Positions 1-62,572 of a DNA stretch of 64,000 bases are shown here, one piece after another. The translations under genes and the position numbers were made by a program. The notes beneath the pieces were generated by a model. It did not search any database and was not told the origin of the DNA. It saw only the letters and a program-made list of their open reading frames with translations. The stretch is taken from the NCBI GenBank assembly GCA_002189035.1, contig NEEC01000008.1:1240001-1304000 (forward strand), in the 5' to 3' direction. Every line of letters starts with the position of its first letter. Within the stretch, counting starts at the first letter, position 1. Origin of the DNA: Utricularia gibba. Taxonomy: Eukaryota > Plantae > Magnoliophyta.

Positions 1-3000
1 AAGTTCACGGTTATGAGTCCTTCCACTGTTTCTCGATTTACGTCTACTATTTCTCCGTCTCCGCCTCAGTTTCTGAGCAGATTGAGCGATTGCAAGAAAA
101 GTAAACTTACCCATAATTTCCCCTTTTTACTAGAAGATGGTGATGGGAAAGCTGGTGGGAATACAAAAAGAATCAAGGAGGTTCTCTGTAAACCAACACG
201 GAGAAATCCTTTGCTTATTGGGGCGTGCGCGGGTGATGCATATACCCATTTTCTTGATTCCATGAAGATTGGTGGAAATGGAATCCTCCCTGATGAAGTT
301 AAAAGCATGAATTTGGTGTCTCTGGAACATGAAATTTCAGAATTCTTAAGTGGGCGTTTAAGTGATGTAGCGATGGAACTGAAGTTAAAGCAATTTGATG
401 ACAGTCTCCCGGGACGTGGAATTCTTGCGCATTGTGGTGACTTAATCGCACTTGTGAATGCTCAATCTGCCGATCTTGTTTCGTGCGTGGTTACTAAACT
501 GAAGAAATCAATGGTGAACCCATGCCGGAAGCTTTGGCTGATTGGATTCTTGGTTGGTGATGATGTCTATAAGAAATTGCTAGAGCGTGTTCCTTCTCTA
601 GAAACGGATTGGGATTTGAATCTGCTTCCCATTACATCCTCCGCTATTGGAGAAAAGTGCCTAAACCCCAGGTCTGTGATCCATTTTGTTATCCTTTTTC
701 TCCTTTCGTTCTTGTGAACTGTTTGATTTTGGAACTTCATTTTGAGGTCCTCGGAATATTAGGATAGCAAGGATGGGTTTTGCTGCCTTCAGCATTTTGA
801 AACATACGACTTGGGATTGCAAATAGACTTGCATGAGAGCTTAAAAATGAAAACGCTTTGACCCTTGTTCGCTGGTTATGGTTTGAACATGAAACTTAAG
901 AATAGTGATATAGGGCCTGCTGGGGTGAACCCGTATCCTGCATTTTAGTATTTGCATCTTTGACTTCCTAACTTTCCCTTCTACTCTCTGCATTTGTGCG
1001 TGACTCTTACCCATTTTGTGATAATCCTTGCAGCTTAATGACGACATTTGTTCCCTTTGGGGATTCTTTTCTGCCAGGTCTGAGCGTGGAACCATGCGCC
1101 CCAATGCAAATATACTGTTGGAACTATGTGAGTGGTGCAATGAGCAGTACAAGCAAGAAGTTTCGGCAGTTTATAAAGGAGAACTTATGGACACTGCTGT
1201 TAAGCAGCCAGAAAACCAGTATTCATCTTTGCAAATAGGTAAGATATCCAGTGCTTTGGTGGTTAGTCAATCATTTGAAGCATGAATGGCTTATGCTGTG
1301 AATTTTCAGTTGGAAGATGCATCATAAATACAGCCTCTGTCTTTTTCAGTGCAGATCAAAGAAGGGAATTTAGAATTGAGTACTAGGGTCGCTGCGCTGC
1401 AAAGAAAGTGGAGTGATGTTTGCCGGAGGCTTCATGCTTTTAAAAAATCTGGTGGGTGTTTTTCCCTCAATGGATCCGTGGTTCCTAGTGAGAAGAAGCT
1501 CCCATTTTCTAAAGATTGTGAGCGAGGGGATGTATCACATCAAATCATTGCAGCACAAAATATAGATTTGAATGACATCCACCAAAGCACACAAATGCCA
1601 ATGGCCTCTAAGTGCTCCAATCTTGTGGGCATAGATTTGAGGCTTGGAACACATCTTGGATTTCTAGATGAATCTCCAAGAAAGCGAAAAGCAAGAGAGG
1701 ACGATGGTGGGAAGTCTGTTGATCATGCAACCCATTTATCATTTCTTTCTGGTCATCTTCGCAAACAGGCGTTTGGAAAGGAATTAGAAGTTCCTTGGAA
1801 TGCTTTGGCCGAGATGGTTTACTGGCAAGTGGATGCAATTCAGGCTGTCCATAGAGCCGTGACACGTTGGAGGCACGAGGAAAACAAGGGCTGCCTTTGG
1901 TTCACTTTTCTAGGACCTGATAAAGTTGGAAAGCTGAAAACTGCTGCATTGCTATCTGAGATTGTTTTTGGACCAACTGGGAACTTTGTGTGTCTTGATC
2001 TTAGCATGGAGATTGCGATTCAGACATCCAAGTCTATTGTTGATTGTTACCACTCCAAGGTGTTGAGCCTGAAACCTGGAAGGAAACTAGTAGTTGATTG
2101 CATTGCTGAAGAGTTAAGAAAGCACCCTAACTCGGTTGTGTTCCTTGAGAATGTCGACAAGGCAGATATCTTGATTCAGGAAAGCTTATCCCTGGCTATC
2201 AAAACGAGGAAATTTCGAGATTCCTGTGGCAGGAACATCAGCATCGAGGGCACCATCTTTGTTCTTGAATCTACCATCTTAAGGATGAGTACAGAAAAAG
2301 ACACCATTGAGGAAGATGCACCCGAGTTTCCCATGGAAAAAGTCTTTCAATCCAGGAATCTACCGATGCAACTTTCAGTTGGAGCTACCACCCACAGTAT
2401 GTCAAACAAAAACTACCCAGCCCGTGTTCTGATAACTGGGCATGATAGTCAAAGAAGCTTGGCAAATAAAACGAAGATGTTAGCTAGCAATGGGCTCTGT
2501 AGATCCCTCATCGACTTAAACTCACCAGTTGTTGAAACTGAAGTGGACATGGATGCAGCAGGTAGTAGAGAAGAGATTGATGCTCGTGAAAAGGGCAGCC
2601 CGACGGATTCTGAGCCGTCATCGTCGTCCTCCTCCTCATCAATTCTGTGGTTGCAACAACTGCTACCGCATGTGCAAGAGAACGTTGTGTTCAAGCCTTT
2701 CAATTTTGATTCTGCTGCACTAGAAGTAGTGAGGGAGATTGATCTTCTGCTACGCGAGGATGGAGTTTCTCTAGAAATCAACGAGCAGGTAATGTGCCAA
2801 CTGCTTGCAGCTGGATGGTTAGCTGAGCACAAGAGGGCGTTCAGGGGTTGGCTTGAGGAAGTCTTGCGCCAGAGCGTCGTGGAAATGAGAAGGTGCATCT
2901 GGTCTGCTTCTTCGAGCACCCAACTGGTGATGAAATTGGAACATCATCTTCAGGGATCCGCCGCAGAAGAGCAGGCAGGGGGGTTATGCCTCCCCGCCCG

Positions 3001-3019
3001 GATACATCTCATCGGTTAA
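1..3019 (+). CDS. SMXL7: SMAX1-LIKE 6/7/8 (D53-like) ClpB-related strigolactone-signalling repressor, 5' end outside the window
   Basis: Exons <1..671, 1034..1238 and 1350..3019 with GT-AG ends. Motifs: DWDLNLLPITS, SLMTTFVPFG/GFFS, CEWCNEQYKQEV, LQRKWSDVCRRLH, FLGPDKVGK, VVFLENVDKAD, and C-terminal LCLPARI. Exon 2 needs one extra base (G run at 1059-1062) to keep frame. The exact paralog among 6/7/8 is unresolved. Confidence 0.9.
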
Positions 3020-8238: not shown

Positions 8239-11200
8239 CTAGAAACCATTGGCCACTCTACTATGGGCAACATGCTTCTTCTCTACAACCGATGCTACTG
8301 CTTTTGTAGGCTTCACATCGTCCCCGGAGGTTGCAAGCGATGAGTTATCAGTCGCCTTGCAGTCACCGTTTGACACAAGAAACTGCGATTCAACTGAATC
8401 AGAGACCAATTCTTGTGAGTTTTTATTCTTATCCTGAGTATTCTCATCTGCCGGTTTACCATCCCATACTTGAGCCTGGATTGATGCACATGGAGATTAA
8501 AATGGCAAGTCCAAGGCAATCTAAGGAAGGCTACAGAAAATTATAGTAATGCCAGTAGAACCTGTTTTTGGAACTGCCGCAGCTTCCCTTTCTTTTCCTG
8601 AATTCTCTTCTGGCGTTCCTCATAAAAGTCAAAATCATCAAGTACACATTGCTTACAAGGGTGGTCTTTGAATATCTTGAGAATCTTGAGCCCCTGCTCC
8701 AATTTCACCTGCGCAACCAAACGAAATTACGTCAGACGTATTTCATTGCAACATAAAAAGACTTTCAGTGAATAAACTGGGAAGCAAGAAAATCATATGC
8801 TGCAATACTACCTCTTGGGTATCCCTACTATTGGTGACGGGCTTGTTCTCATTGTTTTCAAGGATGATATGCTTCAACACACTGTTGGATACATCCTTGA
8901 CAATATGCCACTTCACCGGGAAGCAACCACTCCACTTGTCTTGCTGCCAGTATTCTACACTCTTGTTGAAATCAACAGCGCCAACCATCTCTGCAACCCC
9001 AACAAATTGACCGCTGGTATTGACCTGGAAGAAAAAAATTTCTTTGTGTACGCATTAAAAACATATAAGCAAGTGGCTGCTGTTGACACAGTTTGTTCTT
9101 AAGCTCACCGAAAAGAAGAGAAAAACTGGGCAATCTCCAGTCTTCTGTTGAGCTTCCTGGAATGCAGCATTGAGCTTTTTGTTACCATTTTCAGTGCTCG
9201 ACCACATATTATACTTGATACTCTTATGAATATCATCCTCGCTGTATGACTTAATAACAAAAAACTTCGCATCAGAGTATTCTTCAGGGAAATCCTGTCT
9301 GTTGTATTGCTCGCGATCAGGAGTTGTAGCTGATTTTTCACTGTCCACACCTCCAGATAATGGTATGCTTTGTCCCTTGACAGCCAAAGCAACTTGAGTA
9401 ATGCCCTTGGTATTCTTGGAGCTTTTGGTTCTAGGTCCCCTGTTCAATTCATTCAGGCCATCCATGCTCTCACCTCCATACACATACAGGGCGTTAGCTC
9501 TTCCTCTGGGCTTGTATTTGCCATCAACTGCCATCCAGCCACGCCCATTAGCTCTTGAAGCATAATCATTTGATCCATAACCCACTCCAGATCGGTAAGT
9601 ACTTCCATACTGGCTATATAACCTGTTTGGGTACATCCTATTCATATATCCGCTTGCAGGGTTCAAGCTGGCAAGCGGCCTTGGGTGGTGCAAGCCCTAA
9701 ATATGTAGAGGAAAAAAAAACACATTAAAATGCTTATTTGATGGGATCATTACACTGGTATCGAGTGTAAATGATAAGATGTCAAATGACATGAATAAAA
9801 AGTAAAACGAGTGGCATCCCCAGAACATACCACCGAGGCACGTAAACCTTGATTCCTAAATGGAGGAATTGTATTCGCGTTTGGAATGGTAGTAGCCATG
9901 GACGAACTAGTCACCAGCCTTGGCTGTCCATCCGAATAATATGTGCTCTCCAGCCAGGGGATTGGAGAATGTAGGCCATCAAATGCATATCTTGGATCCT
10001 GAAAACTGGAAGCAAGTATCCCTCCAGGCATTGATGCTCTTCCATAAGAGTTGTTTGGACTATAAGACGAGTTGGGATATCCTGGTTTGGAATGCATGGT
10101 ACCATTATTACTCTTCGCACCACCAGCAGACACAACACCACTAGATTTGGGATTAGCAGAATCCACTGGCAAAGGAGCTTGATCACTTGGTGAAGAAGCA
10201 GCCAACTCGCCTTTCGTGGGGCTGCAGGGTTAGTGAATGCGCCACTGGTTGGTACCATCGACTGAAAGTATGGACTGGGGTACTGATACTGCTGCGCTCC
10301 ATAGAGCTGACCATCATGTGCCAGTGTCGGGACCATAGAAGCAGCACCAGGTGAATATGGAGGATAATGACTGTAGCTATAGCCGGGGTGGTACATAAGA
10401 GAAGCTCCTTCCCCATAGGCCGTCACCCCATCAGGACTCATGAATCTTACCATATCCCATTCAGAACCATCATATGCTGGATCATACAAATTAATTAAGT
10501 TCCGTGTGAATTCTTGAAAACATGAATATGAAGCATGAAGTATATAGGACTGAAATTTACCTCCGTAGTAGCACCCAGCTGGGGTGTAGCTATTTGGATG
10601 GTAGCACACCGTCGGATCTGTAATATCAGGTAAAAGGGTGTAGTTGATTGATCTGGCCGAACCCCACCAGCGATATTATTGGAATCAACTGATATCTAGT
10701 TAAAAAAATATCAAATCTAGTAAGTCAGACACACTAGAAAGAAATGCGGACCAATCAAACACGAAACTCCAAAATACAGACCTTTGTCGAACCTGGAACC
10801 TCTATAGCATTTGCCCTTGAATCCAATGATATTTTCTGCAGCATGTCTGCTGCTTCTGAGTCACTCAGTAAAGGAAATTCGATAAATCAATTGTAGAAGC
10901 ATGGAAAATAATGACACAGACCAGAAATTACAATCATGATACTATCAATCTCAAATATTTTGCACCAGGAAACACAAATCTAGGTGCATCCCCGTTTACT
11001 CTCACTCCCAGTAATGCGCTGAGCGAAGACATCATATAGGTATCGTCCACATACGTCAGCAGTTAAAACAAGCTGAAAAAATATTCTCTTGCAATAGTAA
11101 ACTCCAAATTAAACCAAATCTAAAACCCCTCTCCCCTACCCAAAAAGATCCAGATGCGGGAAAAGAAACACAGAAGTTGTCAATAAGCAATAACACAAGC

Positions 11201-13695: not shown

Positions 13696-15821
13696 ATGGT
13701 TGGGCCGGACCCAGAAGATGGCCGCCGGAGGAGAATGGCGGTGCTGTTATTTTTTTGCTTATGGTGTTCGTTCTCTGTATCTTCCGGCGCTAGGATTTCA
13801 GGTTCCAGGCAGAAACTTGAAGTTCGTAAACACTTGAAAAGACTGAATAAGCGTCCTATTAAGACGATTCAGGTCCACACTTCCGTGATGCGCAGTTAAT
13901 GGCATGTTTCTGTTTACTTGAATGCCGAATCTGTCTACTGGGTTTCACTCTATTGCTGGAATACCAGAGAATGTGTGTTTCAACTCCTGCATTTTTTGCT
14001 TCTCAAAATGTGCTAGTGACGAAAGTCGACGTTTTCTCCTCCTTTTTCGGTTTTTTTGTGAGGCCAAGGTTGTTGGGTTTCTTGTAAAGCTAATTTATGA
14101 GTTTGATGAGCTGACCTTCTCCTTTGAGGTTCTCAATTTTCCTAATTTAACAGTTTTGCTTTTGGAACTTCGCTTTATTCCTCCGTTTGCAGAATGCTTC
14201 TTCATCCTTTTGTACCGCCTTTTTTTTCTGGGTTCTTCGTAGTACAAAGCGCTTTATACTTTCCTTTCTTTCTCAAGGATTTGCACTTACAGAACCTTAT
14301 TAATTTTGACAGAGCCCAGACGGGGATATTATAGACTGCGTTCACATCTCCCATCAGCCGGCTTTTGACCACCCGTTTCTTAAAGATCACAAAATTCAGG
14401 TACATTTCGTCATCGCGTTTGCACTTGCTTTAATGTTACTTGTTGGTCGGAAAATTGTTCATTCAGAAGATTTTGGTGTTTTCTCTTCACCCCCAGATGA
14501 GGCCTAGTTACCACCCAGAAGGCCTTTTTCTTGAAGACATGAAGACTGTTGCATCTACAGAGGCAACAAATCCAATCACCCAGTTATGGCACACCAACGG
14601 CAAATGCCCCGAAGATACAGTTCCTATTAGAAGAACTAAGGAAGATGATGTTCTAAGAGCAAGCTCTGTCAAAAGGTATGGCAAGAAGAAGCACAAGAGT
14701 GTCCCCAAGCCCAGGTCTGCTGATCCCGACCTTGTGAACGAAAGCGGCCATCAGGTACTTGTGATGCACCTGGTTTTGTTCACCAAATTCTGAAGCTTTC
14801 TCATTCGCTTGCTCTGTTGTTTCACAGCATGCTATAGTGTACGTCGAAGGAGACAAGTATTACGGAGCGAAAGCTACGATCAATGTCTGGGAACCTTCGA
14901 TACAGCAGGCTAATGAATTCAGTTTGTCGCAGATTTGGGTGTTGGGTGGCTCTTTTGGTGAAGATCTCAACAGCATTGAAGCAGGTTGGCAGGTGAGATG
15001 CTCTTAGCATATTTTCTAGGATGAAAAAAGCTTCCTTTTTGACGATGCTTGTGTTCTGTGTCGTTGTCTATGGTTTCAGGTGAGTCCAGATCTTTACGGA
15101 GACAACAACACCAGGCTTTTCACTTATTGGACAGTAAGTTGCTCCCAGCTTCATGAACAGAAATGCACAAAATTTCATACTTCATATTCTGCATTGTGTT
15201 GGTAAACAGAGCGATGCGTACCAAGCCACAGGCTGCTACAATCTTCTCTGCTCAGGATTCGTTCAAGTAAACAATGAGATCGCGATGGGTGCGAGCATCT
15301 CCCCGATTTCAGCGTACAGGAACTCGCAGTATGATATCAGTATTCTTATCTGGAAGGTTGGTTTATCCCACCCAACTGGTGGCACATTCGAAGCTCAAAA
15401 ACCCATTTGCAAGTCATGATCAGTGAAGTTTGCGATGCTGCAGGATCCCAAGGAGGGGCACTGGTGGATGCAGTTCGGCAACAACTACGTTCTTGGCTAC
15501 TGGCCGTCGTTCTTGTTTTCGTACTTGGGCGACAGCGCGTCGATGGTTGAATGGGGCGGAGAGGTGGTGAACTCAGAGCCGGACGGCGAGCACACGTCGA
15601 CTCAGATGGGGAGTGGGCATTTCCCAGAAGAAGGTTTCGGCAAGTCAAGCTACTTCAGAAACATTCAGATTGTGGATGGCTCCAACAACCTGAGATCCCC
15701 GAAAGACCTGGGCACATTCACAGAGCAATCCAACTGCTACGACGTCCAGACCGGAAGCAACAGCGATTGGGGTCACTACTTCTACTACGGCGGTCCGGGA
15801 CAGAACCCCAACTGCCCATGA
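13696..15821 (+). CDS. Neprosin-domain (DUF4409 + DUF239) secreted glutamic peptidase-like protein
   Basis: Seven exons. Signal peptide [19 protein letters not shown] (start at 13696 or 13735), [72 protein letters not shown], and [10 protein letters not shown]...[12 protein letters not shown]. Confidence 0.92.
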
Positions 15822-16801
15822 TCGATTTGAACGAAGCGTGTCACCGGTGTTTGTATGAATTACGAATGAAACAGCCAATCTGACCCGCAAAATGTGTGTG
15901 TTCTGTCAAGAATCATCAGCAGTTCACCCCCATCTGTAACTTTTTGATGAGTGAAACATGTCTTAACGTAACGAAACAAAAAGCTATGAATGGAGGAGAA
16001 GCAACAGCAGTGCAGAGCGGCGCCATTTCCGATGCATTCCTACCACCTTGTCCATTTCCCTTCTGCGATCACGTGATCCAACTCAGTGATCGCCAAAAGA
16101 AGAGCAACAACTCACAAGAGAATCTTTCGAGTGGTCAAAGCGTCGTACGCCATAAATCACAAAATGGATATTTCTCAAAGCCCTCCCGTGACTCTTTCTG
16201 CTGCGCACATCTTTAAAATTATCATCAAAACAACCGCCGGGTTCAAATGGTCATAAAGGTGCCATTTTGAATCGGGAATTTGGAGTGTGTTTGCAAGAGA
16301 AAGAAGCCCAGTCAACCTTCTGTGTTTGCAACTTCGGCTGAGGACTTGCGTCAATGGCGGGCGAATCCAGTCTGAGCCATTGGGCTTCCGTGCGACAGAG
16401 ACAGATGTCTCTTACAACCAGCCACCTCCATCACTCTGCTCGCCCGTGTTGGATCTTCCGTGTGGTGCAGTGGATTCCTCTCCTGTGAAGCAATCACTGC
16501 TTGCTAAGAGCTAGTTGCCATTTGACTTTCAGAAGGAAACAACCCTGACAGACTTCCCGACAAGACAGCAACGTGTGGAATTGCTGGATTGGGCTGGAGC
16601 AAGATTTTTTGGGCCGGAGGAAGTTGGGTCACGTGGGTGGGGCCTACAGAAAGCTGGCTTTCCTCGTGGTGGGCCTTCACGGACGCCACCCAATTTATCA
16701 ATTCTCGTGTTTGAAGTTTTCACGTCCACGCGAGGACAAGGGAATCGTTCCAGTCCCTCCGTTTCTCCATCTTCCATCGTCGATCGTGTGCTGTAGGGAA
16801 G

Positions 16802-18634
<1,833 letters not shown>

Positions 18635-18864
18635 GATAATCCTCTCCATTTGTCTGATGATACAATCAGTGTACTCTTTTTGTGAACTCTCCTTCCTCAC
18701 CCCCTTCATTTGCTGTGACTGTTGGTTTAAAAATGTGGAGCTACGTCCAAATGGTTCCATCGGAGAATAGACTTTAAAATACTAGTTCTCAATTCTCTCA
18801 TCCAAAAGTTCATATGCTGCATTTCGATATCAAAATCAATGAAATATAATGCTATATTCCAATG

Positions 18865-27234: not shown

Positions 27235-28120
27235 TCATGCAGACGATTTCGAGTAAAAGTGGATGGTAGCAGCTAAACCCAAGATGATGATCGGCAGCAA
27301 GAACTGAACTGTCTTGAATATGAACTCCCATGTTTTGTCTTGGTTGTAGTAAGGCTGCTTTGGAGGGGTGTACTTGGTTTCAGCAGGGATGGATGATGAG
27401 TTGATTTCACCAACGTAGAACTCCTCCATCATCGCCTTAGCCGAAGCGCTGTGCCCGATGTCTTCGAAGTCATCCGTAGCATCCTTTCCTGGAACACAGG
27501 AGAGGGAACTCGTGAACCATAAGAGATGCTGCTCTCCCTGCTCATCTCAACACCCTTGCCCTTGTCTATTCCAAAGATCAGAAGTCAAAAGAGTAACAAA
27601 ATCTATGCTGGTTATGGGTTTCTCAGAGACAATAGTCTCAGTTTTTCATTAATACTTCGCAATGGAAAGAGTTCTAAGCTACTGTTGAAGGGGAAGAACA
27701 AGAATAGTCAGGCTCATCGAAGATCTGGTTACCTGTTGAAGAAATCAGCACATCATCCCCACCGGGGTGATCTTCCAGGAATTTAGTGACATCGTAGACC
27801 TATCATCACCGCAGTCAATCGCATTGCAGAAGAAAGACACTCGGGGAATCTAAGAGAAAAACGCTTGTTTTTCACAAAGAACTAAGTTTCAGATCGTTGT
27901 TTACATCAATTCTTTTGTAGCTGGTAAATAGCAGTTGGAAGATCGGATTTTCTCAGGCCATCAAATGAATATACGAGCAAAGAAGCCGCCCAGAAAGAAA
28001 CAACAGCATTTTTCATCAACTACAAAGGGAGAAACGCAGTACCTTGCCACCAATTACAAGCCAACAATCCTTGCTGCTGTTGTGCTCTGAAACCTCCGCC
28101 AAGGTGTAAACTTTCGCCAT
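27235..28120 (-). CDS. CB5: Tail-anchored cytochrome b5
   Basis: Exons 28043..28120, 27733..27799, 27235..27488. [40 protein letters not shown], and a C-terminal TM segment QFLLPIIILGLA. Confidence 0.96.
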
Positions 28121-29275
28121 TCCGAAAACACCCAATTAAGGAAAGAAGCAATTAAGATGGTGGTTGGGGGAATACTTATAGAGCCGAGGGGAGGGAAGTA
28201 GTTGGATTGGGGAACTGGAGACTGTAAAGAATAGCGGCTGGCGACGCGACAGATGATCGAGCAGGTTTGGTGAGAAGACCGTGGTGGGTAAGGTTAGAGT
28301 ACCCACAGAAAAAAAAGAGGAAAACTAGCGGCTTGGGAAGTTTCTCTTTCATTTGTATAGCAGGTTGGCTGATGTAATCGCAATCCAGGAGAATTTAACT
28401 CCTCCTGAGTTGAATTGCATCACATTCCAATGTGGTTCCTCGCCTCAAACAACTATCCTAGATCATGGAGTCATCGTTGAGCTTTGAAGGGCTACCCTCC
28501 CACCAAACCTTCCACTGACCTTAGATCTATCCTACAGAAATGGATCGTGATTACGGGCTCCTTCAACTGCCACAAAAGAATTCACCTTCAGAAGCAGGAT
28601 GCTAATGACCCATGGAAACAGCAGGGATTGAGATGCATGGTTTGAACTTGTGGGATCGATCCCATACGAGATGATGACCACTAAATTGCAGCTACACAAA
28701 AGTTCTATGGCCAATGTGACAGCTCCCAAAACAGCTGCAGGTACCGTTCCACCTTCCAATAAAGAGAGGAACATTTGAGAAGCTGATTAACTTGGGAATG
28801 ATGTATGATCAAAGCTTTTATCCAAGTGCTCCATCATCAATTATTCATTCGATTCAATAAAATGATCATTCAGATTTAATAGATTCGTTAGTCTTGACTT
28901 GGATGTTGATAAAAATAAGTATAAATGTTATATGACAAAGAACAGGCACGGGTGCATCATCAATATAGAGATGTGTACGTAGATACGGACATGATAAATT
29001 TTTTAAAAAATCCTATTAGAATATAATTATGATACATTTATTTAAATTTATTATTGTTGTTGATAATTAATAATAATTCAAAAGTTATTGCTAAAAAAAT
29101 AGCAATCCAATTGTAAAAGGAGGATAAAACGAAGGGATGGATGATAATTAATGAAGTCGATAGAAAATATTTATTATTTTTTTAATTTTTTTAATAATAA
29201 CATTGTATCTAAATGCACCCATATACCCAAGTATAAGCGAAAAATACACGTATTGCTGATTTGCACCTATTAGTT

Positions 29276-29790
29276 AATATTTTAATTTTATCCATATTAA
29301 TTTACTTATATTCATAATTCATATATATTATTATATTAAAATTTCAGTTTTGATCATTACGTTTAATCGATTCGATAAAATGAATATGATAATTTTGAAT
29401 GTAAGCATTGATCATTTTAGTCATTTGACTAATCTAATTATAATTAATTATTAATTTTTAAAACAAATACATTAGATCTTTATTAGTTTATAAGTTAATA
29501 AAATTTATTCTCATATTTTAGATAACCACTATCTGCCATCTACCATGGTGCCACCAGTTGACTCCCGCCGCCACCAATGCATGGAAATCTGCTCGTAAAT
29601 ATAAAAATCAATTTTATTAAATTATAAAATAATGATGATTAAATGTAATCAATTTTTAAATACAAATGATTAATTGGAATTAAAAGAAGTTAATCAAATG
29701 ACTAAAATGACCTTGTTTACATTTTAATATAACAATAGATACAAATTATGAATATATAATAAATTAATATGATTAAAACTTAAATATTAG
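29276..29790. mobile_element. Foldback / MULE-MITE-like element with long imperfect inverted arms and a GC-richer core
   Basis: Left arm ~29276-29519 aligns with the reverse complement of ~29597-29790. For example, gatcattttagtcatttgactaa pairs with ttaatcaaatgactaaaatgacc (21/23), and catattaattta/atattcataatt/ttatattaaaat blocks are shared. No target-site duplication identified. Confidence 0.6.
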
Positions 29791-30211
29791 TATAACAGTT
29801 TTAATTACTATGAGTTTCTCAAAGTTAAATGGCATACGAAAATGATAAAATGACACAAGAAAAATTGCACGCCTTTGCGTAAATGGGGTGTATCAGAAAT
29901 TTGATCATCGTTTCATCAATGTGATAAAAATTACCAAATTTTTAAAGTTACTGTATAAATACTATTATCCATTTTTAAATGATCCTGTATAAATATTCAA
30001 TATTATATTTCCAAGCCCATCATAGTTGACTTGTTGAAGTTTACCCAAGTTGTCGTATTGTATTCTATATTATTGGAAGGGGAAGAAAACAAAAGTGGGA
30101 GTTTTCGGCACATGTTCCAGTCCTGATCTCCCTCGTCCTTTATGTTTCTGGGTGAGGCTTTGAAGCTGTGGGCAAACGCTGTTTCTGGGCTTCGACTTCG
30201 GTGAACGAAGC

Positions 30212-31088
30212 ATGGCTGTGAGATTTTTTTCTGTTCCCTTTCTTGTTAAAGACGAGATTTTGTTGAATTACTTTTTCTGGGCTCTTTCCTAGTAGATTTC
30301 ATTGCTTATATGCTGATTTTCAGTGTTTTTGCTCAAGTACTGACTGCTAGAACATCTTGCTCTCTCGCTCACCATTGTTTCAGCTGTGTAATTGCGCTTA
30401 GAAGAGTGATTCTGTGCAGTTTATTTTGTGGTTCGAAACTACGGAAGTGTTACATTACGATTTATGCAATAGGAATCACAAGGAAGCCATGGCCAAAAGC
30501 ATGGTCATAGCTTTCCCATTCATTCAGAGCATCGTCAGCCCAGACGCCGAGGAGGCAAAGATCCTGGTACCAATAGAGCTTCAAACACCAGACAAGGCAA
30601 AGGAGACACGAGTGTAAGTGTCAGCAGCTACCCTTTTTCTTCTGTTTCTTGGAGCATTTTCAACTATGGTTTTGTAGTCGGATGAGGAGGCAGCTGTTCC
30701 TCCATTCGACACACTGAATGAGGATCCTCCGGAAGACATATCCGGCATCTTCGCAAAACTTCGAGAGAAAAGGGAAACGCCTGGAAACACTGCAAAGCAT
30801 CGCTCTGGCAACACACTCCACACCCATGGAGCTTCAAAACCCAGCCAACGTAAGGTCAGTTCTTCTTCAAGTTGTATCATGGAAAAATCAACACACTTTT
30901 GCTTGCATCCAGCAAGAAACTAAGAAGAAGTTACAACTGCAAAAGATCTGAGCTTTGCTCTTGCGTCGGTATCCCAAATTTCTAGTGACTTTCAGTTCAG
31001 TGGGCTGTTCCACAACTCTAGGAAAGTAACTGGTGTTGAATCCTTCTGGTTGTAGCAGATATCCAGATGCTGCTGCTTCCCTTGGTGA
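30212..31088 (+). CDS. RIN4: RIN4/NOI-family protein, ~118 aa, lacking N-NOI and with a degenerate C-NOI
   Basis: In-phase exons 30212..30217 (MA|GTGAGA), 30473..30613 (|GTAAGT), 30678..30854 and 31059..31088 (NAGNAG acceptor). Contains KGDTS|SDEEAAVPPFDTLNEDPPEDISGIFAKLREKRETPG and the C-terminal palmitoylation motif SRCCCFPW*. Absent from the ORF track. Confidence 0.85.
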
Positions 31089-31829
31089 CACATCTGCTCG
31101 AAGCTGTGAAAGAAAGATGGAGTGTTTAAAACCACATCGGATTCCAAGTTTAATGTTTTATGGTTTCTGTATACATTGTCGATTTGTTTCCTATTTTTTT
31201 GATGGTTATTAATAATAATTGATGAATTTTTTGGAAAAATGATTTTTATCATATTATATATAGATCTTTGAATGAAACTTATATCGTTATATTTGATATC
31301 TGTTAGATATCAGAGTTAAATTAAGATATAATAAAACAAATATAAGTGATTACATTGAATTTCTAAGGGACGGAAGTTACTTGTCCAAGAAAAAGTGTAA
31401 GGATGTTAGACAAATTACATATCTGTTATAAACAAAATAAATAAAAAAATTTATATAGAAATATCTTATTTAACATTACATAAGGTTTTTTTCTGAAAAT
31501 TTGGAATATAGAATTAACGATTAGATATGTTAAGTATCAATATCGTGTAAAAAGAGAATATATCGTTGCATTGGATATTCTAAAATAAGCTATAATAAAC
31601 AATATGCTATATTTAGAATCAAATATATTATGCAATATTTGAAAATTTATGAAGTAATAAATAGAAAAAAAGTTGATCAAGTGATCAAATTGGGCGCGGG
31701 CCCCACGTGGCGTTAACTGCTTTTGTTGTGTGAGGAAGTGGAGGTATGTGATCAAATTGGTGGCGGGGTGATCGCGTTCTGAATCACCCATGTTCTTGGA
31801 GCACGATTCCTGATCGAGTGCGCGGATTG

Positions 31830-32480
31830 ATGGGTAGCGATATGGAGGCTGGGTTTGCGAAGCTTCAGGGTGAGGATTTCGAGTATTTCATGCAGACATA
31901 TTCGATTGTTCTGGGCCGAAACTCCAAGAAATCAATGGTGGATGTGGACCTTTCGTCTCTGGGGGGAGGCATGAACATTAGCCGCAATCATGCTCGCATC
32001 TTCTACGACTTTGCACACAGTCGTTTTGCCCTCGAGGTTCTTGGGAAGAACGGGTGCTTCGTGGAGGGCGTGCACCACTTGCCCGGAAACCCGCCGGTGA
32101 AGCTTGAATCTCAGGATCTATTGCAGATTGGGTATAAAGAGTTTTACTTTTTGTTGCCGGTGAAGAGCATTTTTGATGGGCAGATGGTTTCCGCGCATCA
32201 TGGGACCGATTCTCGTATGGGTTCTGCAAACCGAAATATGACGCAGCAGCGGAATTCGGGAGTGATGGTGCCCTGTGGCGGCGCGGGGTCTGGTTATCGG
32301 AAGAGCAGGAGGAGTTGGGCTGAATTTTGTGAGGGAGGGATCGAGGAAAACGGTGCCGGTGATGTTGGTGATGAATCATCGGGAGGAAAAAGAATCAGGA
32401 GCGGTGATGGGGCTGATGATAATGGTGGCGGTGGTGTTTGGGGATATGGCTCAGGAGGGATGGAGGACTCATCAGATTAG
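31830..32480 (+). CDS. Forkhead-associated domain protein (FHA1/FHA2-like), short form
   Basis: MGSDMEAGFAKLQGEDFEYFMQTYSIVLGRNSKK...NISRNHARIFYDF...LGKNGCFVEG...LLQIG, followed by a Gly/acidic tail. Single exon. Confidence 0.9.
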   Translation: MGSDMEAGFAKLQGEDFEYFMQTYSIVLGRNSKKSMVDVDLSSLGGGMNISRNHARIFYDFAHSRFALEVLGKNGCFVEGVHHLPGNPPVKLESQDLLQIGYKEFYFLLPVKSIFDGQMVSAHHGTDSRMGSANRNMTQQRNSGVMVPCGGAGSGYRKSRRSWAEFCEGGIEENGAGDVGDESSGGKRIRSGDGADDNGGGGVWGYGSGGMEDSSD

Positions 32481-33007
32481 ATCATTTTGTTCCTGCACTG
32501 CTTCTGTTTATACTCATTTACTCGTCCTCTTTTCGCAGCACCTTTTTTTACTCTTTGGTCGGAACGCTAGAAGTATTGGGTTCATGAGGATGTTGATTTT
32601 ACATTCTTCCCAAATGAATTTGCCTTCATGATCCGCATCCTATCTATTTCCAGAGCTTTTCAAACAACCTGAACGTGGGACGTCACAGGCAATGAATCCA
32701 TTTTTGTGAACCATTATATTAGTAAGAATGCAGTTATAGGATCTAGTGAAAGTAACTCTATTGTTCACTAACGTTCAGAAGAATCTTTCTTCCGACCTGT
32801 TGAAAACTCTGTCGTGCGTAGTTGGGGAAGAGTTCCCATCAATACAGAGCAAAGTATTCTGCAGGCTACCTGTATCTGAAACTAATCATGGCGACGGCCT
32901 GAACCGTGCGATTGTAAGGAGAACCAAAACTATGATATCATGCTGTGAGAGATGTTTGATGTTTCTGTAGCGAAGTACTGGGGTTCCAAAAACCATAGAA
33001 AAGCTGT

Positions 33008-33893
33008 TCATCCGTTAGCTCCTAGCTCCGTCTTCTCAAAGGGAAGAATCATGTTCCTTGACTCTGTCTCAGGTAAACTTTTGGCAGCAGGCGTACCTGT
33101 TCTTCTTTGGCTTTCTGTAAAATCAGAGGAAACTTGGTCATATTCAGCCTATTTGGTTTTGAAACTTGCTAGACATCTCACTCTTGTTGTTGATTGCTAC
33201 GCGAGTCAGTTCTAGAAACTCGTCCCAGCTGAATTTGCTTAGTTCTTGCTTCTCCTCTTCGGGAAGTTCAAAATTGGGTTCTCTTCCACACATGAACGCA
33301 GCCCTGAAGTGCAAACTGTCATGAAGTGGATCTGCTTTGATGTAGCGGATGTCACAGTACCTGTCGTACAAGCGGGCAGCCTCTTCTTGGGACGCAACAG
33401 TCCCCAAATGGATCTGTTTCTTGTCGACTTTGATGGCGGCTTGCCATTTCAGGTTCTTGAAATATACACCTCTCATGATGCAAGGTTCCTGGTTTTCAAC
33501 CCGCTTTCTGCGGTGCTGCTTTCTCCTTCTAATCTCTGGAACCATAGATGCATGCTGCAGCTGCGCTTTTGATGAAGAATAGACAGAAACATATGATGTA
33601 TAGATCCCATTTCCTGAAGTAGTTTCCTACCCAATACAACATATCACAGTCTCAGATGCTGCATTCGTGACAGGACAAAAAAAGAATGGATCTTGAGACC
33701 GTAATCTTACTTCTTTTGCCTTGAAAGCATCGTGATTAGAAGGCAGATGATTTGTGCTCGATTTATGTTCTACGCCATTTTTCAGAAACGCAACAGTTAG
33801 CAGACATATTTAGGCTCCAAGTCATAACAAAAAACAGAGAAGAAGAATACCAGTGGGCAATGCTAACAGTCTTCGTCTTCTGATGCTCACCAT
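33008..33893 (-). CDS. AP2/ERF-like transcription factor (At4g13040/APD1-like)
   Basis: MVSIRRRRLLAL start. RRRKQHRRKRVENQEPCIMRGVYFKNLKWQAAIKVDKKQIHLGTVASQEEAARLYDR|AAFMCGREPNFEL. Stop at 33008. 5'UTR introns extend to ~34600. Confidence 0.9.
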
Positions 33894-37153: not shown

Positions 37154-38303
37154 TGGAGGCCTTGGCTTCAGTGGGTTTCTGTGAATCTTACATGCGGTGT
37201 CACCAAGAGGCTACTTTTTCTTGTAACTGTGTAGTGCCTGTGACATAGAGATTTTTCATCGATGCTGTCTCCGTACGCCGTCTGCCCGGTTTTCCTTTGG
37301 TATCATGAATTGTCTATCAGAATTATCTCTGTCAATGATGCAAAAGAATTTCTGGTTGTTTGGTCAAGCCATTACTTACCACTGTATCTATGCTTTGCAT
37401 GGTTCGGTTCTATATCTAGGGTAGGACATATATGTTGAGTTGGGGGTAAAATGGTTGCTGAATTCCGTGATTAATGCTTTCTTATTGTGGGATCTAACCT
37501 CTTCGCTAGCATGGTCCATGTCATGAATCACTTAGCCTTGCTTCTTTTCCTCTACCCAGAATAGCTTTTCCACCTTCACCATGTGGTGCTGCCTATAAAA
37601 GTGAATAATTGTTACCGACAGGCTACACGGACCAGCAGACAATTGGGGTCCCTAGAGTTGAAAAGCTTTGTGAGTAGAAGCTATAAGGTGTGAAACACGG
37701 TTCGGTCCATATGCAAAGGAGTTTCTTCCCATGTGATATCCTTTTACCTTTTAATCGTTTAAAACCCTTTCAAATTCTCCATCAATCAACCTCATGATTT
37801 AGCTGCTTTTTTTGTCACCGGATTATGCTCCATCCATCAATCACCAGAAGGCTTCCAGGTCAGTTCCTGTGGGGTTTCTTAGCACATCTGTTCATTAGGT
37901 TCCTTTTCACGTTTTTTGAACCAGTATCATGAATATGGTTGTAAGCTTAATTAATATGATCGATCCTTCAATTTGGCATGAGCCCTGGACACTTCCTTTT
38001 CTTATTAAGTGCATGAATTTAACGTGTCATGACACCCTCCAGAGGTGTTGATTAGAATGGCTGTCTGTTATGGGGAGTCAATACTCTTAACACCTTTCTC
38101 ATATCCTACCAATGTTTTCATGATCCATGGACCGGTAGTTCGATCCTTATCACCCTCCTGGTGGAACTCTTCGAGCCTGGTTGGTTTTTAAAACACAACT
38201 CATGAAGAAGGGTCTTTCCTTGGCAGTTGCCACTGTTCACGGCGTGGTCTTCTTCTCCCAAGTTCTGCACAAACTCTTGAAGATTTTGGATTTCTCTGCA
38301 GAA

Positions 38304-39305
38304 ATGGAGCTGCGGAGCCGTGAGGCCAAATTTTCAGCTCTCGTGTTGTTTGACTTGTTATCTGCCCTGCTCTCCTTCATGATCTCCCATCCTCTCTATT
38401 TGTTCTACTTGATTTTGTTTACCCCCTGCCTTCTCAAACTCGTCTCTTTTTTCTGCCCTCTGTTCTTGGCCATGTGCCTCCTCTCCGCCGCACTATTGAC
38501 CTCCCAACAAAGTTTCCGTTCCCCTGAGTTAGTGGGTAAAAGCAGGGGTTTCCCTGGATCTTCCATTGCTGCCGCTGTGAACTTGAGTTCCGAGGAAGAA
38601 GAGTTTATGGGTTTTTGGGATCTTGGAATTGGAGAATTCCTTTTTGGATCATCTGTGATGGAGATCGAAAGCGCCGATGATGTTAGTGGGAAGGAGGAAG
38701 GAAAATCAGCTCAGACGCAGGACTGTGCGGTGGTGCTCTCTGAAGAAGTAAAGCAAGACAAAGTGGAGGTGGTTTTCAATCCCGTGACTGTAAACCCATG
38801 TGATGATTCCGAGGAACCAGAGAGAACGAGTGTGGATCGTTCGTTGAACGGGGAAGATGAAGCAGCACCTGAAAACATAAGCCAGGCTGGAGCTCCGACC
38901 CGGATCAGCAGCAACAAATTTCAACGCAGCAGTGGCCTCAACGTGTCCAAGGAGTGGAGGAAGACGTTGGGATGCCAGCTGTTGGAGGAGCGGCAAGGAG
39001 GCGGATGCGCCGCCGCCGACGGGATGGACTCGTTGTGGGAGGTGCAGGAGGTGGAGGTGAATATTCCGGACAGAACGAAGTCCAAACTCTCCGCGAAAGA
39101 CGATGAGGAAGAGAGCGGCGGCGAGGAAGTGGCGGTGGTGTGCTGCCTGCAGGGCCTGAAGTTGTCGGCCGGAAAAATGAGTCTCGGAGTCGGGCGGCGG
39201 AAGCTGCGGAATATTACCAAGGCCATTAAAAGGTACGGTTGGCTGCAGCGCCATGTTCAGGTGAACCAGAAGGTCCATGACAATGGCGACAGTTACAACC
39301 ACTAA
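38304..39305 (+). CDS. Uncharacterised acidic membrane protein (At3g25130-like)
   Basis: Single exon. N-terminal TM region ISHPLYLFYLILFTPCLLKLVSFFCPLF, acidic middle, GMDSLWE, and C-terminal CCLQGLKLSAGKMSLG...ITKAIKRYGWL. The ATG follows a tctctgcag acceptor, implying a 5'UTR intron. Confidence 0.8.
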   Translation: MELRSREAKFSALVLFDLLSALLSFMISHPLYLFYLILFTPCLLKLVSFFCPLFLAMCLLSAALLTSQQSFRSPELVGKSRGFPGSSIAAAVNLSSEEEEFMGFWDLGIGEFLFGSSVMEIESADDVSGKEEGKSAQTQDCAVVLSEEVKQDKVEVVFNPVTVNPCDDSEEPERTSVDRSLNGEDEAAPENISQAGAPTRISSNKFQRSSGLNVSKEWRKTLGCQLLEERQGGGCAAADGMDSLWEVQEVEVNIPDRTKSKLSAKDDEEESGGEEVAVVCCLQGLKLSAGKMSLGVGRRKLRNITKAIKRYGWLQRHVQVNQKVHDNGDSYNH

Positions 39306-43960: not shown

Positions 43961-45160
43961 ATGGGTATGATTTTCCGAATCGAGTGTTTTAGTATCTTAT
44001 TATCCAAGAGATTCTGCTGGTCGTTATGGATGATGCTTCAACGATGGACCTGCAGGTATCTCTCGCGATTCCATGCACAAGAGGAGAGCCACCGGTGGCA
44101 AGAAGAAGGCATGGAGGAAGAAGCGAAAGTGGGTTTTTCTATGGTTTTATGTTTTTTCGTTTGCTCCTTATTTCTGCGTAGCTTCTATCGTTAATATGAC
44201 TATAATGGTTCTATGTAGCTCTGCCTGTCTGTATCAATTCGTATCTGTTTAATTTTCTTTATTCTGTACGGGCTGAATTCGCTCTGTATCCTGAAAAGTT
44301 TATGGTCCATTTCTGAATTCGCTCGTTGTCAAGGTATGAGCTTGGCCGGCAACCTGCAAACACCAAGCTGGACACGTCTCAGAAAACAGTAAGGAGAATC
44401 CGTGTTCGTGGAGGGAATGTGAAATGGAGGGCTTTAAGGCTGAATACCGGAAACTATTCCTGGGGCAGTGAAGCTGTTACTCGAAAAACCCGTATCCTGG
44501 ATGTTGTTTATAATGCCTCAAACAATGAGCTTGTGAGGACCCAAACACTGGTCAAGAGTGCCATTGTCCAGGTTGATGCTACGCCATTCAAGCAGTGGTA
44601 TTCAACTCATTACGGTGTGGACATTGGTAAGAAGAAGAAGGCTAGTTCGAAGAAAGATGAGCCTGAGGTAACTCAATACTCTTCCTTTCCTTCCACAATT
44701 TTTGTTCGCATAATGCCATTCTGCATATACTTCTCTTTGTTTCCGCAAATCAGTAATCTATCTATATTCATCTTTGTCCATCGATTCTTGTCCTCTTATT
44801 GTACACGCACTTTGTAAACTTGACAGGAAGGAGAGGGCACTGCAGCTGATGCCAAGGTCAGCAATCATGTCGAGAGGAAGAGACAGAAACGCCAGTTGGA
44901 TCGCAAAATCGATCCACATGTTGAGGAGCAGTTCAGTTCCGGAAGATTGCTGGCCTGCATCTCCTCCCGCCCTGGACAATGTGGAAGGGCTGACGGGTAA
45001 GAGCAAATCTTTAACCCGTCATTCATTCTTCTGAAGGATTCCTCTTCTAACATCCCTCTTCCACCCACGCTTCAGATACATTCTGGAAGGGAAGGAACTC
45101 GAGTTCTACACGAAAAAAATCCAGAAGAAAAAAGGAAAAGCTGCTGGTGGCGGTGCTTGA
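43961..45160 (+). CDS. RPS8: 40S ribosomal protein eS8
   Basis: Exons 43961..43964, 44056..44128, 44334..44667, 44827..44996, 45076..45160. [54 protein letters not shown]. Confidence 0.97.
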
Positions 45161-53339: not shown

Positions 53340-54564
<1,225 letters not shown>

Positions 54565-58338: not shown

Positions 58339-60013
58339 ATGGCCAACAGTGGTGTCGGGGGGAGGAGGAGGCGCCGACGGTGGGGAGTTGAGGAGGGACC
58401 TCAAGAAACTGGTGCAGGGGATGCTGGATGAGGATGATGTGAGTGTGGAGGATATTGATGCGGCGCAGATGATTCTGTCTGCGATCAAGGAAATCAAAGT
58501 GAAGAGAGGGGGGGAGTCATTGAAAACTCGTCAGCAGCATCATTCCCGCGATACCCAGATGGCGTCCTCGTCGGTGCCGGAAGTGTTTATCTGCCCTATG
58601 TCCAGGGAAATCATGAGGGATCCTGTGATTATCGCTAGCGGAAAGGTTTCACGTTTCTCTCTCTTTTGTTTTGGATATCGATTTTGAGTGAATTGATGAC
58701 CAATTTTATCGGAGAAATCATCTTCTTGGTTCTCTGATTGCGATTCTGTTTGTTCTTTCGATCGTCTTGAGAGCTTTTAGGGTTCTTTTCTTCGTGGTGT
58801 GTCTACTGTTTATTTGTGTCGACCAGTGCTTCAGTTTTCTTTGTACAGAATAGTGTTCTGTTTTCGGATTTTAATTCCAATTGTTGCTGAGGGTAATGAA
58901 TGATTTTCCTGATACGGATTTTGGTAGACTTTTGACAGGCCCTTCATCCAGAAATGGTTGAAAGATGGAAACCGAACTTGCCCAGAAACGCAGCAAGTGC
59001 TTACGCACACGCTTCTTACTCCAAATCACTTGGTTCGCGAATTGATAACTCAGTGGTGCAAAGAACAGGGGTTTCAGCTACCAGACAATGCTATGTATTT
59101 TGATAAGAATGGATTCACGGAGGGTGAAAGGGATAACTTCCTCTCCTTGCTCGGCAAGATTTCATCTACATTATCTGAACAAAAACAGGCTGCTAGAGAA
59201 TTGCGCCAGCTGACGAAGAAGATGCCTTCTTTTCGTTCCCTTTTCAGCGAATGCCCTGATGCAATAAACATGCTGCTCTTCCCGCTGTCTCAGACGGAGT
59301 GGAATAATGAGATGCATTCAGACCTCCAGGAAGATGTTATAACAACCCTTTTGAACATTTCAATTCATGATAGCAACAAGAAGCCTGTGGCAGAAACACC
59401 TTCTGTGATTCCCCTGCTCATTGATGCATTGAAAGGGGGGACAATAGAAACAAGAAGCAATGCTGCGGCAACCCTTTTCACCTTGTCAGCTCTCGACTCA
59501 AATAAGATTTTGATTGGGAAATCCGGTGCACTGAAACCCCTGATTGATCTGCTGGATGAAGGGAATCCTTTAGCTATGAAAGACGCTGCTTCAGCTATCT
59601 TCAACCTGTGCATCATTCATGAAAACAAGCTGAGAGCTGTTAGAGATGGTGCTGTGAGAGTCATCCTTGATAAGATCAGGAGTCGGATAAATGTCGACGA
59701 GCTAGTTTCGATCCTGGCCATTCTAGCATCCAACCCAAAAGCCATCGAGGAAATGGGAGATCATGGAGCTATTCCTTGCTTATTAAGTATCATCAGGGAA
59801 ACATCATGCCCCCGAAATCAAGAGAACTGCATTGCAATCATTCACTCCATCTGTTTCAGTGATCGGTCAAAGTTGAGGGAACTGAATAACGATGAAAATA
59901 CCCGCAGGACAATCTCCCATCTCGCTCAGAATGGAACATCAAGAGCCAAGAGGAAAGCCAACGGCATTCTAGAGAGACTGAATCGAACCATCAACCTCAC
60001 ACACACCGCATGA
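58339..60013 (+). CDS. PUB9: U-box/ARM E3 ligase (PUB9-like)
   Basis: Exons 58339..58645 and 58928..60013. U-box VPEVFICPMSREIMRDPVIIASGK|TFDRPFIQKWLKDGNRTCP, then ARM repeats (DLQEDVITTLLNISIHDSNK, GTIETRSNAAATLFTLS) and the end TINLTHTA*. G-run frameshift at 58357-58362. Confidence 0.9.
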
Positions 60014-61038: not shown

Positions 61039-61334
61039 ATATGGTCATATGTCACAGAAATAACTTGGTGATGATTGCGACAGTAATCTCAACCAAAGCA
61101 TCATTAGATTTGTAAGGCTTAACAAGCACATCACTAAAGCATGTGTCCACGCCATGATCGGACCGAGCCCCTTCTTTGGATCCGCGCTGACCCGCCCCGC
61201 ATACTGAGTTCAAATGACGTGTAGATATAAATACCCCACGGGGAAGATGCTAATTGATTGCAACGTCGAACCACCGAAATCATTCACCGAGTTCTGAGTG
61301 AGTCGGCGGCAGCTGGAGGCCGGTAGCCGCGGCT

Positions 61335-62572
61335 ATGCACGACGAGAATGGAAGGAGTCACCATGAACTCTTGCTTGAAATGGAGAATCTGAAAGTGATC
61401 TGCGCGCTTGGCCGCGGCGCCGAGGGAGTGGTCTTCCTGATCCGAACCGACGACGGGAAACTGCTTGCTCTTAAAGCGATACAGCGATCTTCTTTCGAGA
61501 GGAAGAAGAAGAAGGTACTTAATTCCAGCGCCTTCGATGACTACAGGAGAGTTTTCTTCGATGCAGATGTTCTTGCGTCTTTCGATCATCCGTTGTTGCC
61601 CAAGCTTCACGGAGTTTTAGTAACCGATAAGGTTGTCGGGTATGCCATGGATTACTGTTCTGGAGGCGATCTTAATTCTCTGAGGAAGCAACAGACGGAG
61701 AAAATGTTTTCCGAGGATTCGATTCGGTAAGGGTTTTTTTTTTTCAACCGCAAAGAGAACTTGGACGGGGAAATCGAGGCTAATTGCAGATATTTTTCAG
61801 ATTCTACGCTGCGGAATTGGTTCTCGCATTGGAGTATCTTCACAATTTGGGAATCGTTCACCGCGACCTGAAACCGGAAAATGTGATGGTTCAAGAGAAC
61901 GGGCATTTGATGCTCGTAGATTTCGATCTCTCCACAAAACTCCCCTATAAACCACCGGATCCCCAACCGATCACTCAGCTGAAACCAGAAATTAAGTCGA
62001 GGAAGAGGAAGAAATTCGCCTTCCTGTTCAAGCGGCGCGATTCGGGGATCTCTCCAGAGGATTCCTCCCGCGGAAAATGGACTACGTGCTCGGAGTCCAG
62101 TTCTGTGGCGAAATCGAACTCATTCGTGGGAACGGAGGAGTATCTGGCACCGGAAATCATCCTCGGCGACGGCCACGATTTCGCCGTCGATTGGTGGTGC
62201 CTAGGGGTCGTGCTCTACGAGATGCTCTACGGTACGACGCCGTTTCGAGGAGCTAACCGAAGGGACATCTTCAGTCGAATCCTCAAAAAAGCACCGGATT
62301 TAACGGGGAACGCGACGCCGTTAAGGGACCTCATCGGTAAATTACTGGAGAAGGATCCCAGGAAAAGGATCGACGTTGGGGGAATCAAAAGGCACGAGTT
62401 TTTCGAGGCGGTAGATTGGGGTTCAGTTACTGAAATGCCCAGGCCGCCGTTTATTCCCGAGCTAACAGACGTCGAGGTCATGATGGGAAATAAGGAAATA
62501 AATGTGGAGACTTTCGTCCACGAGGTGTTCACCCTTGACAACATGACGGAATACCAACGACCTATGGGCTAG
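61335..62572 (+). CDS. OXI1: AGCVIII (AGC2) Ser/Thr kinase, OXI1-like
   Basis: join(61335..61726,61801..62572). [39 protein letters not shown]|[18 protein letters not shown], the AGCVIII-type DFD motif, [14 protein letters not shown]. Confidence 0.92.

Follow-up and report, generated by a model that had tools for sequence, protein, structure and literature searches.

The window analysed here, a 64,000-nucleotide stretch of the Utricularia gibba genome, carries a small RIN4-like gene on the plus strand at 30212-31088. The gene comprises four GT-AG exons with an open frame of 357 nt (118 codons), and the spliced frame obtained by joining the exons in a local script contains no internal stop. 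Exon 1 (30212-30217) is a start micro-exon of two codons, ATGGCT (Met-Ala), with a GT donor directly after it. After intron 1 (30218-30472; 255 nt, GT..AG, GC 0.37), exon 2 (30473-30613) contributes 47 codons whose product is basic, rich in His, Gly, Arg and Ser, devoid of a NOI motif and terminated by ..KGDTS. Intron 2 (30614-30677; 64 nt) occupies the same position as in sesame RIN4 and is followed by exon 3 (30678-30854; 59 codons), which starts with SDEEAAVPPFDTL and carries a degenerate C-NOI domain including ..EDISGIF... Intron 3 (30855-31055; 201 nt) separates it from exon 4 (31056-31088), which encodes QISRCCCFPW and then a stop. All three introns are GT..AG and phase 0, as expected from the clean splice sites and frame claimed in a first-pass annotation of this DNA. 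Intron 1 ends in a TAG (30470-30472) that is in frame with exon 2; this stop fixes the exon 2 acceptor and leaves no upstream extension in that frame. GC content is 0.50-0.52 in the exons, 0.37-0.41 in the introns and 0.24-0.31 in the flanks, a difference typical of genuine exons set in AT-rich intergenic DNA.

A candidate core promoter, proposed from sequence only, is provided by two TATAAATA boxes on the plus strand (29954-29961 and 29988-29995), which precede the ATG by 217-258 nt. The open reading frame list also includes a 20-codon upstream ORF (30142-30204, plus strand) that ends 8 nt before the start codon and would lie in the 5' leader if transcription begins near the TATAAATA boxes. 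An AT-rich spacer, which includes 29163-29202, is found approximately 1 kb upstream of the gene. Within the gene, an out-of-frame ATG in exon 2 opens a 42-codon ORF (MAKS...; 30489-30617, plus strand) whose frame would end within exon 3 after splicing, and an antisense ORF of 99 codons (30581-30880, minus strand) overlaps exon 3; open frames are therefore common and easy to find in the 30212-31088 stretch. Nine sequencing runs contain the stretch, eight of them with 45-85% of its sampled words and the ninth with 12%. As this word share is high although 47% of the stretch is intron, the runs may be DNA or unspliced RNA.

The closest comparison is provided by the RIN4 orthologue of sesame (Sesamum indicum; L002:174-2447). 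Sesame exon 1 (L002:174-179) likewise reads ATGGCT, with the donor GTAAGT; exon 2 spans 178 codons, with the N-NOI (VPKYGSW..YTVYF) at its start and ..RGDES at its end; exon 3 (62 codons) starts with PDEGPTIPRFGEW, contains ..NFSHIFDKVREER.. and carries the C-NOI IPRFGEW..FSHIF; and exon 4 encodes RCCFPWW then stop. Sesame RIN4 and the U. gibba gene have in common the ATGGCT micro-exon, three phase-0 junctions, an RCC(C)FPW-type tail and the residues on either side of the junction between exons 2 and 3, GD[ET]S before it and [PS]DE after it. This layout and these junctions uphold the RIN4 ancestry that had been proposed from the arrangement of exons. The two genes differ in exon 2, which in sesame includes the N-NOI and in U. 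gibba is 131 codons shorter and without a NOI, and in the C-NOI, which is canonical in sesame (65.9 bits for its C-NOI exon against the AvrRpt-cleavage family, Pfam PF05627) and reads VPPFDTL..ISGIF in U. gibba (13.3 bits).

Homology searches, run exon by exon, relate exon 3 to its sesame counterpart. PF05627 matched exon 3 end to end over profile positions 2-37 with an E value of 0.053, its 13.3 bits lying below the gathering threshold of 20.3 bits. BLASTP aligns 36 residues of exon 3 with the C-NOI exon of sesame RIN4 at 39% identity (E = 6e-6), and the Smith-Waterman score between the two third exons is 68, compared to 25.5 +/- 5.1 for shuffled sequences (0 of 2000 shuffles reached 68). The same two exons are reciprocal best tblastn matches (E = 0.001 and 0.002) in a search covering the window, with 29101-29299 cut out, and all fetched loci. 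Wider searches with exon 3 returned no true relative in a word-indexed protein collection at two length settings, two matches among 1.84 billion representative proteins (both spurious tandem-repeat proteins), chance ubiquitin matches only among PDB sequences, and no usable match in the ESM Atlas. Exon 2 gave no Pfam match and no detectable similarity to the 178-codon exon 2 of sesame RIN4. Taken alone, the Pfam score and the wider searches with exon 3 are weak support for RIN4 identity; it was the neighbouring gene that proved decisive.

An FHA2 orthologue lies 0.7 kb downstream of the RIN4-like gene. Its first large exon or ORF (31830-32480, plus strand; Pfam FHA, 44 bits) serves as the synteny anchor, and its best matches are all FHA2 proteins of Lamiales, at 62-85% identity. 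From there the window continues with a homologue of a sesame 223-amino-acid gene (33147-33626, minus strand), a Wound_ind gene (approximately 36.6-37.2 kb), an acidic gene (38139-39302) homologous to an Andrographis gene adjoining GT8, and an NTF2-RRM gene on the minus strand (40-43 kb). At the sesame FHA2 locus, the order is the AvrRpt-cleavage gene (plus), FatA (minus), FHA2 (plus), Tim17 (minus) and the 223-amino-acid gene (minus). The window block is collinear with the FHA2 loci of sesame, Andrographis and Thlaspi, and the RIN4-like gene precedes FHA2 in the same orientation, matching RIN4 in sesame. A claim that these neighbours match the RIN4 syntenic block is accordingly supported, the RIN4-like gene being collinear with the block in sesame and Andrographis. 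In Arabidopsis, the neighbours of RIN4 include FatA (At3g25110), GAUT8 (At3g25140) and an NTF2-RRM gene (At3g25150).

Sesame is the sole outgroup in which RIN4 was found at this position: none lies within 10 kb of FHA2 at the loci fetched from Erythranthe, Primulina, Andrographis, Thlaspi, Handroanthus, Buddleja, Striga, Rehmannia and Perilla. A weak match in Handroanthus was considered as a RIN4 candidate and rejected as AT-rich noise. Two genes of the sesame order are missing from the window block, namely FatA, which in sesame lies between RIN4 and FHA2 (31089-31829 in the window), and Tim17, which in sesame follows FHA2 (32481-33146). Both absences would be expected of a fractionated duplicate block and fit a loss of genes following duplication in a highly compact genome. 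In Genlisea aurea, PIG-S and FHA are 218 bp apart at the FHA locus, with no RIN4 between them. Upstream of the RIN4-like gene, the opposite strand carries a cytochrome-b5 homologue (27238-28135, minus), whose counterpart in Genlisea aurea (L003:4882-5409) immediately follows FHA and shares its strand. The arrangement of cytochrome-b5 and PIG-S points to a local rearrangement or to a different duplicate block.

The remainder of the window is densely occupied, with about 20 genes in 64 kb. These include a SMAX1/ClpB-like AAA gene (1-3019, plus), a YTH-domain gene (9055-10609, minus), an alpha-tubulin gene (15400-18650, plus; recognized by eye from one exon), ribosomal protein S8e (44326-44817, plus), a U-box/ARM protein (58958-60013, plus) and a protein kinase that may be an OXI1-like gene (61300-62572, plus). 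A GDP-mannose 4,6-dehydratase gene (53340-54564, minus) is split into two overlapping ORFs in different frames, covering profile positions 1-162 and 162-332, most simply through a short intron of approximately 100 nt, or else through a frameshift.

The most evident changes in the RIN4-like gene concern the motifs by which the family is known. Of the two NOI domains of RIN4, it has only a degenerate C-NOI. PxFGxW is absent from all frames of the 64-kb window, and a search with relaxed variants recovered only the remnant of the C-NOI; no N-NOI remnant was found in 29300-30700, and exon 2 holds no N-NOI, most of the disordered linker of RIN4 having gone as well. The first-pass annotation had described the N-NOI exon as absent. 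Its loss of the N-NOI stands, and its notion of a separate lost exon does not, as the N-NOI of sesame RIN4 sits at the 5' end of exon 2. That annotation had also called the AvrRpt2 consensus broken, with which our reading agrees. The remnant of the cleavage site (30696-30716, plus) reads VPPFDTL, compared to VPxFGxW in the family and IPRFGEW in sesame. Measured against [VIL]P[KRP]FGxWD, the extended site VPPFDTLN keeps V-P-P-F and has exchanged Gly for Asp, Trp for Leu and Asp for Asn. Residues are numbered here as in Arabidopsis RIN4, according to their distance from the exon junction. Gly152, the residue preceding the AvrRpt2 cut, is Gly in the family and in sesame and Asp in U. gibba; Asp153, the residue ADP-ribosylated by AvrRpm1, is Asp in Arabidopsis, Glu in sesame and Thr in U. 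gibba; and Trp154, a Trp in the family and in sesame, is Leu. The loop after the cleavage motif is full length in the family and in sesame, and has lost three residues in U. gibba; the homologous stretches before and after the gap share one frame, so this deletion is in frame.

Further along the C-NOI, the site of the Y/FTxxF motif, which is among the published criteria of the NOI family (PMC3661340; 10.64898/2026.05.19.726385), reads ISGIF in U. gibba and FSHIF in sesame. The Ser and the final Phe are kept, and the aromatic residue before Thr166 (Phe or Tyr in the family) is Ile. The position of Thr166 itself is occupied by Ser in both species, and the criteria used for selecting NOI proteins accept either Thr or Ser there (10.64898/2026.05.19.726385). 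A change from Thr166 to Ser in an altered context had been put forward for the U. gibba gene. The Ser and the altered context (Ile in place of the aromatic) are both present, and the emphasis on Ser was overstated: because the canonical RIN4 of sesame has Ser too, it is not novel in U. gibba and, judged by this alignment, dates back at least as far as the sesame orthologue.

Set against these losses, several features outside the cleavage site were retained. Exon 2 still closes with a Ser that is, by its spacing, the equivalent of RIN4 Ser141, and the next residue is Ser rather than Pro. ISGIF and the AKLREKRE that follows it (30738-30776, plus) align together to sesame FSHIFDKVREER. Single-sequence AlphaFold2 modeling predicted a helix at exon 3 residues 22-33 with a block pLDDT near 80; for sesame exon 3, AlphaFold2 placed a helix at 18-36, the equivalent place, with low confidence. 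According to these models, the helix after the Thr166 position (IF-K-RE-R) is retained in the U. gibba gene. Both introns typical of NOI/RIN4 genes are present, one directly before the C-NOI (30614-30677) and one shortly before the Cys tail (30855-31055); both agree in position with sesame RIN4 and with the published account of the NOI/RIN4 family, which includes a conserved intron 2 before the C-NOI (PMC3661340). At the C-terminus, the cysteines for predicted acylation are present in CCCFPW then stop, as in CCFPWW then stop of sesame, and the three cysteines (31068-31076, plus) constitute the presumed S-acylation anchor. Acylation of RIN4 at Cys203-205 directs the protein to the plasma membrane (PMC13378167). 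The membrane anchor reported as kept is thus there, as a predicted acylation tail.

We consider it fairly probable that the gene is a positional RIN4 orthologue that has been cut to 118 codons and encodes a small membrane-tethered product, which either fulfills a reduced role at the membrane or is drifting. That the locus is the positional orthologue of RIN4, and not a short single-NOI paralogue, follows from the synteny with sesame, from the common micro-exon, junctions and tail, and from the homology of exon 3; its anatomy and its loss of motifs are likewise legible in the DNA itself. The strongest competitor to this reading, less likely yet serious, sees the gene as a relic in decay: a redundant duplicate of RIN4 that is non-functional or unexpressed and in which the frame simply remains unbroken so far. 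Such decay would explain a Pfam score for exon 3 under the family threshold, an exon 2 that is unrecognizable beside that of sesame, the disappearance of the defining NOI motifs and the lack of a similar protein in the collections searched, and the presence of other open frames in the same stretch reduces the weight of an intact one. It is harder to reconcile with 118 codons that are open over four exons with every GT-AG site and phase kept, with a clear difference in GC between exons and introns, with a three-residue deletion that stays in frame, and with the survival of tail, junction residues and helix despite approximately 60% divergence in the best-conserved exon. Purifying selection may therefore have acted on the gene, as suggested by its open four-exon frame, its preserved splice sites and phases and its in-frame deletion, and also by the tail, junction and helix having outlasted that divergence.

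An ordinary short single-NOI family member (NOI1-9-like), rather than a RIN4 orthologue, would also have one NOI-like domain, a length near 118 amino acids and a Cys tail, and proteins with one NOI outnumber those with two in plants (PMC9514647). We nevertheless hold this to be very improbable and rejected it, since synteny, exon layout, junction and tail are all of the RIN4 type: the gene sits at the position and on the strand of sesame RIN4 upstream of FHA2, and has the four-exon layout of RIN4, its GD[ET]S and [PS]DE junction residues and its RCC(C)FPW tail. Furthermore, the cleavage motif of the single-NOI proteins studied in N. benthamiana lies near residue 15 (10.64898/2026.05.19.726385), whereas the NOI here begins after residue 49, and the gene lacks the PxFGxW used to define NOI proteins. 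Equally remote is an incomplete gene model, with a further N-NOI exon upstream or alternatively used, which gains some plausibility from a start resting on a 6-nt micro-exon, a type that is easily mis-assigned, and which was rejected because no frame of the window contains PxFGxW or a relaxed form of it except for the C-NOI remnant, 29300-30700 yields no N-NOI-like match, the micro-exon with its GT (ATGGCT then GT) is identical in sesame RIN4, and an in-frame TAG directly precedes exon 2.

RIN4 is the classic example of a guarded immune hub in plants, with NOI motifs whose conservation extends from mosses to angiosperms. The protease AvrRpt2 recognizes VPxFGxW and cuts after Gly152, unless the F of the motif is changed to A (10.64898/2026.05.19.726385); NOI10, which is without the cleavage site, is not cleaved (10.1101/583054). 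Activation of RPS2 requires the soluble N-NOI fragment ACP2 together with NDR1 (PMC13378167). Suppression of RPS2 persists with the membrane-tethered C-terminal fragment ACP3 (153-211) and with a 142-211 derivative, and ACP3 also acts on PTI as a hyperactive suppressor (PMC13378167). If the truncated RIN4 orthologue of U. gibba is expressed, its product would be a small disordered protein that S-acylation would hold at the plasma membrane. From the published motif requirements, it would probably resist proteases of the AvrRpt2 type, and no N-NOI (ACP2-like) fragment could be set free from it as a trigger. As a protein that would be uncuttable and without an ACP2-like fragment, it would presumably not be a classical guardee of the RPS2/RPM1 type. 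Expression, acylation, cleavage resistance and present function are inferred; the gene may have been kept for a reduced membrane role or may be drifting after loss of the guard pathway.

The biology of the lineage would fit the loss of a guardee. Few NLRs were reported for Utricularia gibba and Genlisea aurea in a survey of the loss of EDS1/PAD4/SAG101 and NDR1 (10.1101/572560), and a reduced EDS1/PAD4 signaling pathway is likewise reported for the plant family; this context agrees with a RIN4 that is no longer guarded. The same survey scored RIN4 as present or "conserved" in 18/18 species (10.1101/572560), a scoring that hides the erosion seen in the U. gibba gene. We tentatively speculate, as a possibility well short of an even chance, that every RIN4 copy in the lineage shed its effector and guard motifs after the loss of NDR1, EDS1/PAD4 and most NLRs. 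If so, U. gibba would show in nature how a guardee decays after the loss of its guards. The conservation of PxFGxW from mosses to angiosperms would then have been maintained by immune signaling and not by a housekeeping role, and the retained 118-amino-acid protein would be a selected, uncleavable, membrane-tethered module resembling ACP3. The gene could serve as a natural dissection of RIN4, separating the parts that serve only the interplay with effectors and guards from those kept for another role. Its practical value is modest, as a candidate for a naturally cleavage-resistant C-terminal module of RIN4 with which NLR suppression, EXO70/AHA binding and the contribution of the NOI core could be studied.

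A degenerate C-NOI is not without precedent, as Arabidopsis NOI10 and NOI11 (At5g48657 and At3g07195), two-NOI relatives of RIN4 that represent a Brassicaceae-specific expansion (PMC9514647), also have a C-NOI without an AvrRpt2 site, and NOI10, in its representative model, is not cleaved. These two nevertheless keep an N-terminal NOI with a cleavage site, whereas the U. gibba gene has lost the N-NOI as well; the literature searched held no precedent for the joint loss of N-NOI and cleavage consensus in a RIN4 orthologue. AtNOI1-9 and the NbNOIs are similar to the U. gibba gene in size, with one NOI-type domain and an acylated tail. Unlike the NbNOIs, the gene has no canonical motif, carries an extra 47-codon exon before its NOI and lies at the syntenic position of RIN4. 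Compared to Arabidopsis RIN4 (At3g25070; 211 amino acids), it is shorter (118 amino acids) and lacks the N-NOI and VPxFGxW, with Thr at the equivalent of Asp153 and Ile at the equivalent of Tyr165, and it belongs to a lineage reported to be without NDR1. The two share the Cys-Cys-Cys tail, the helix after Thr166, the Ser141-type Ser and a disordered composition, and what is retained in U. gibba roughly matches the membrane-tethered C-terminal third of Arabidopsis RIN4, the part represented by the 142-211 derivative and by ACP3 (residues 153-211).
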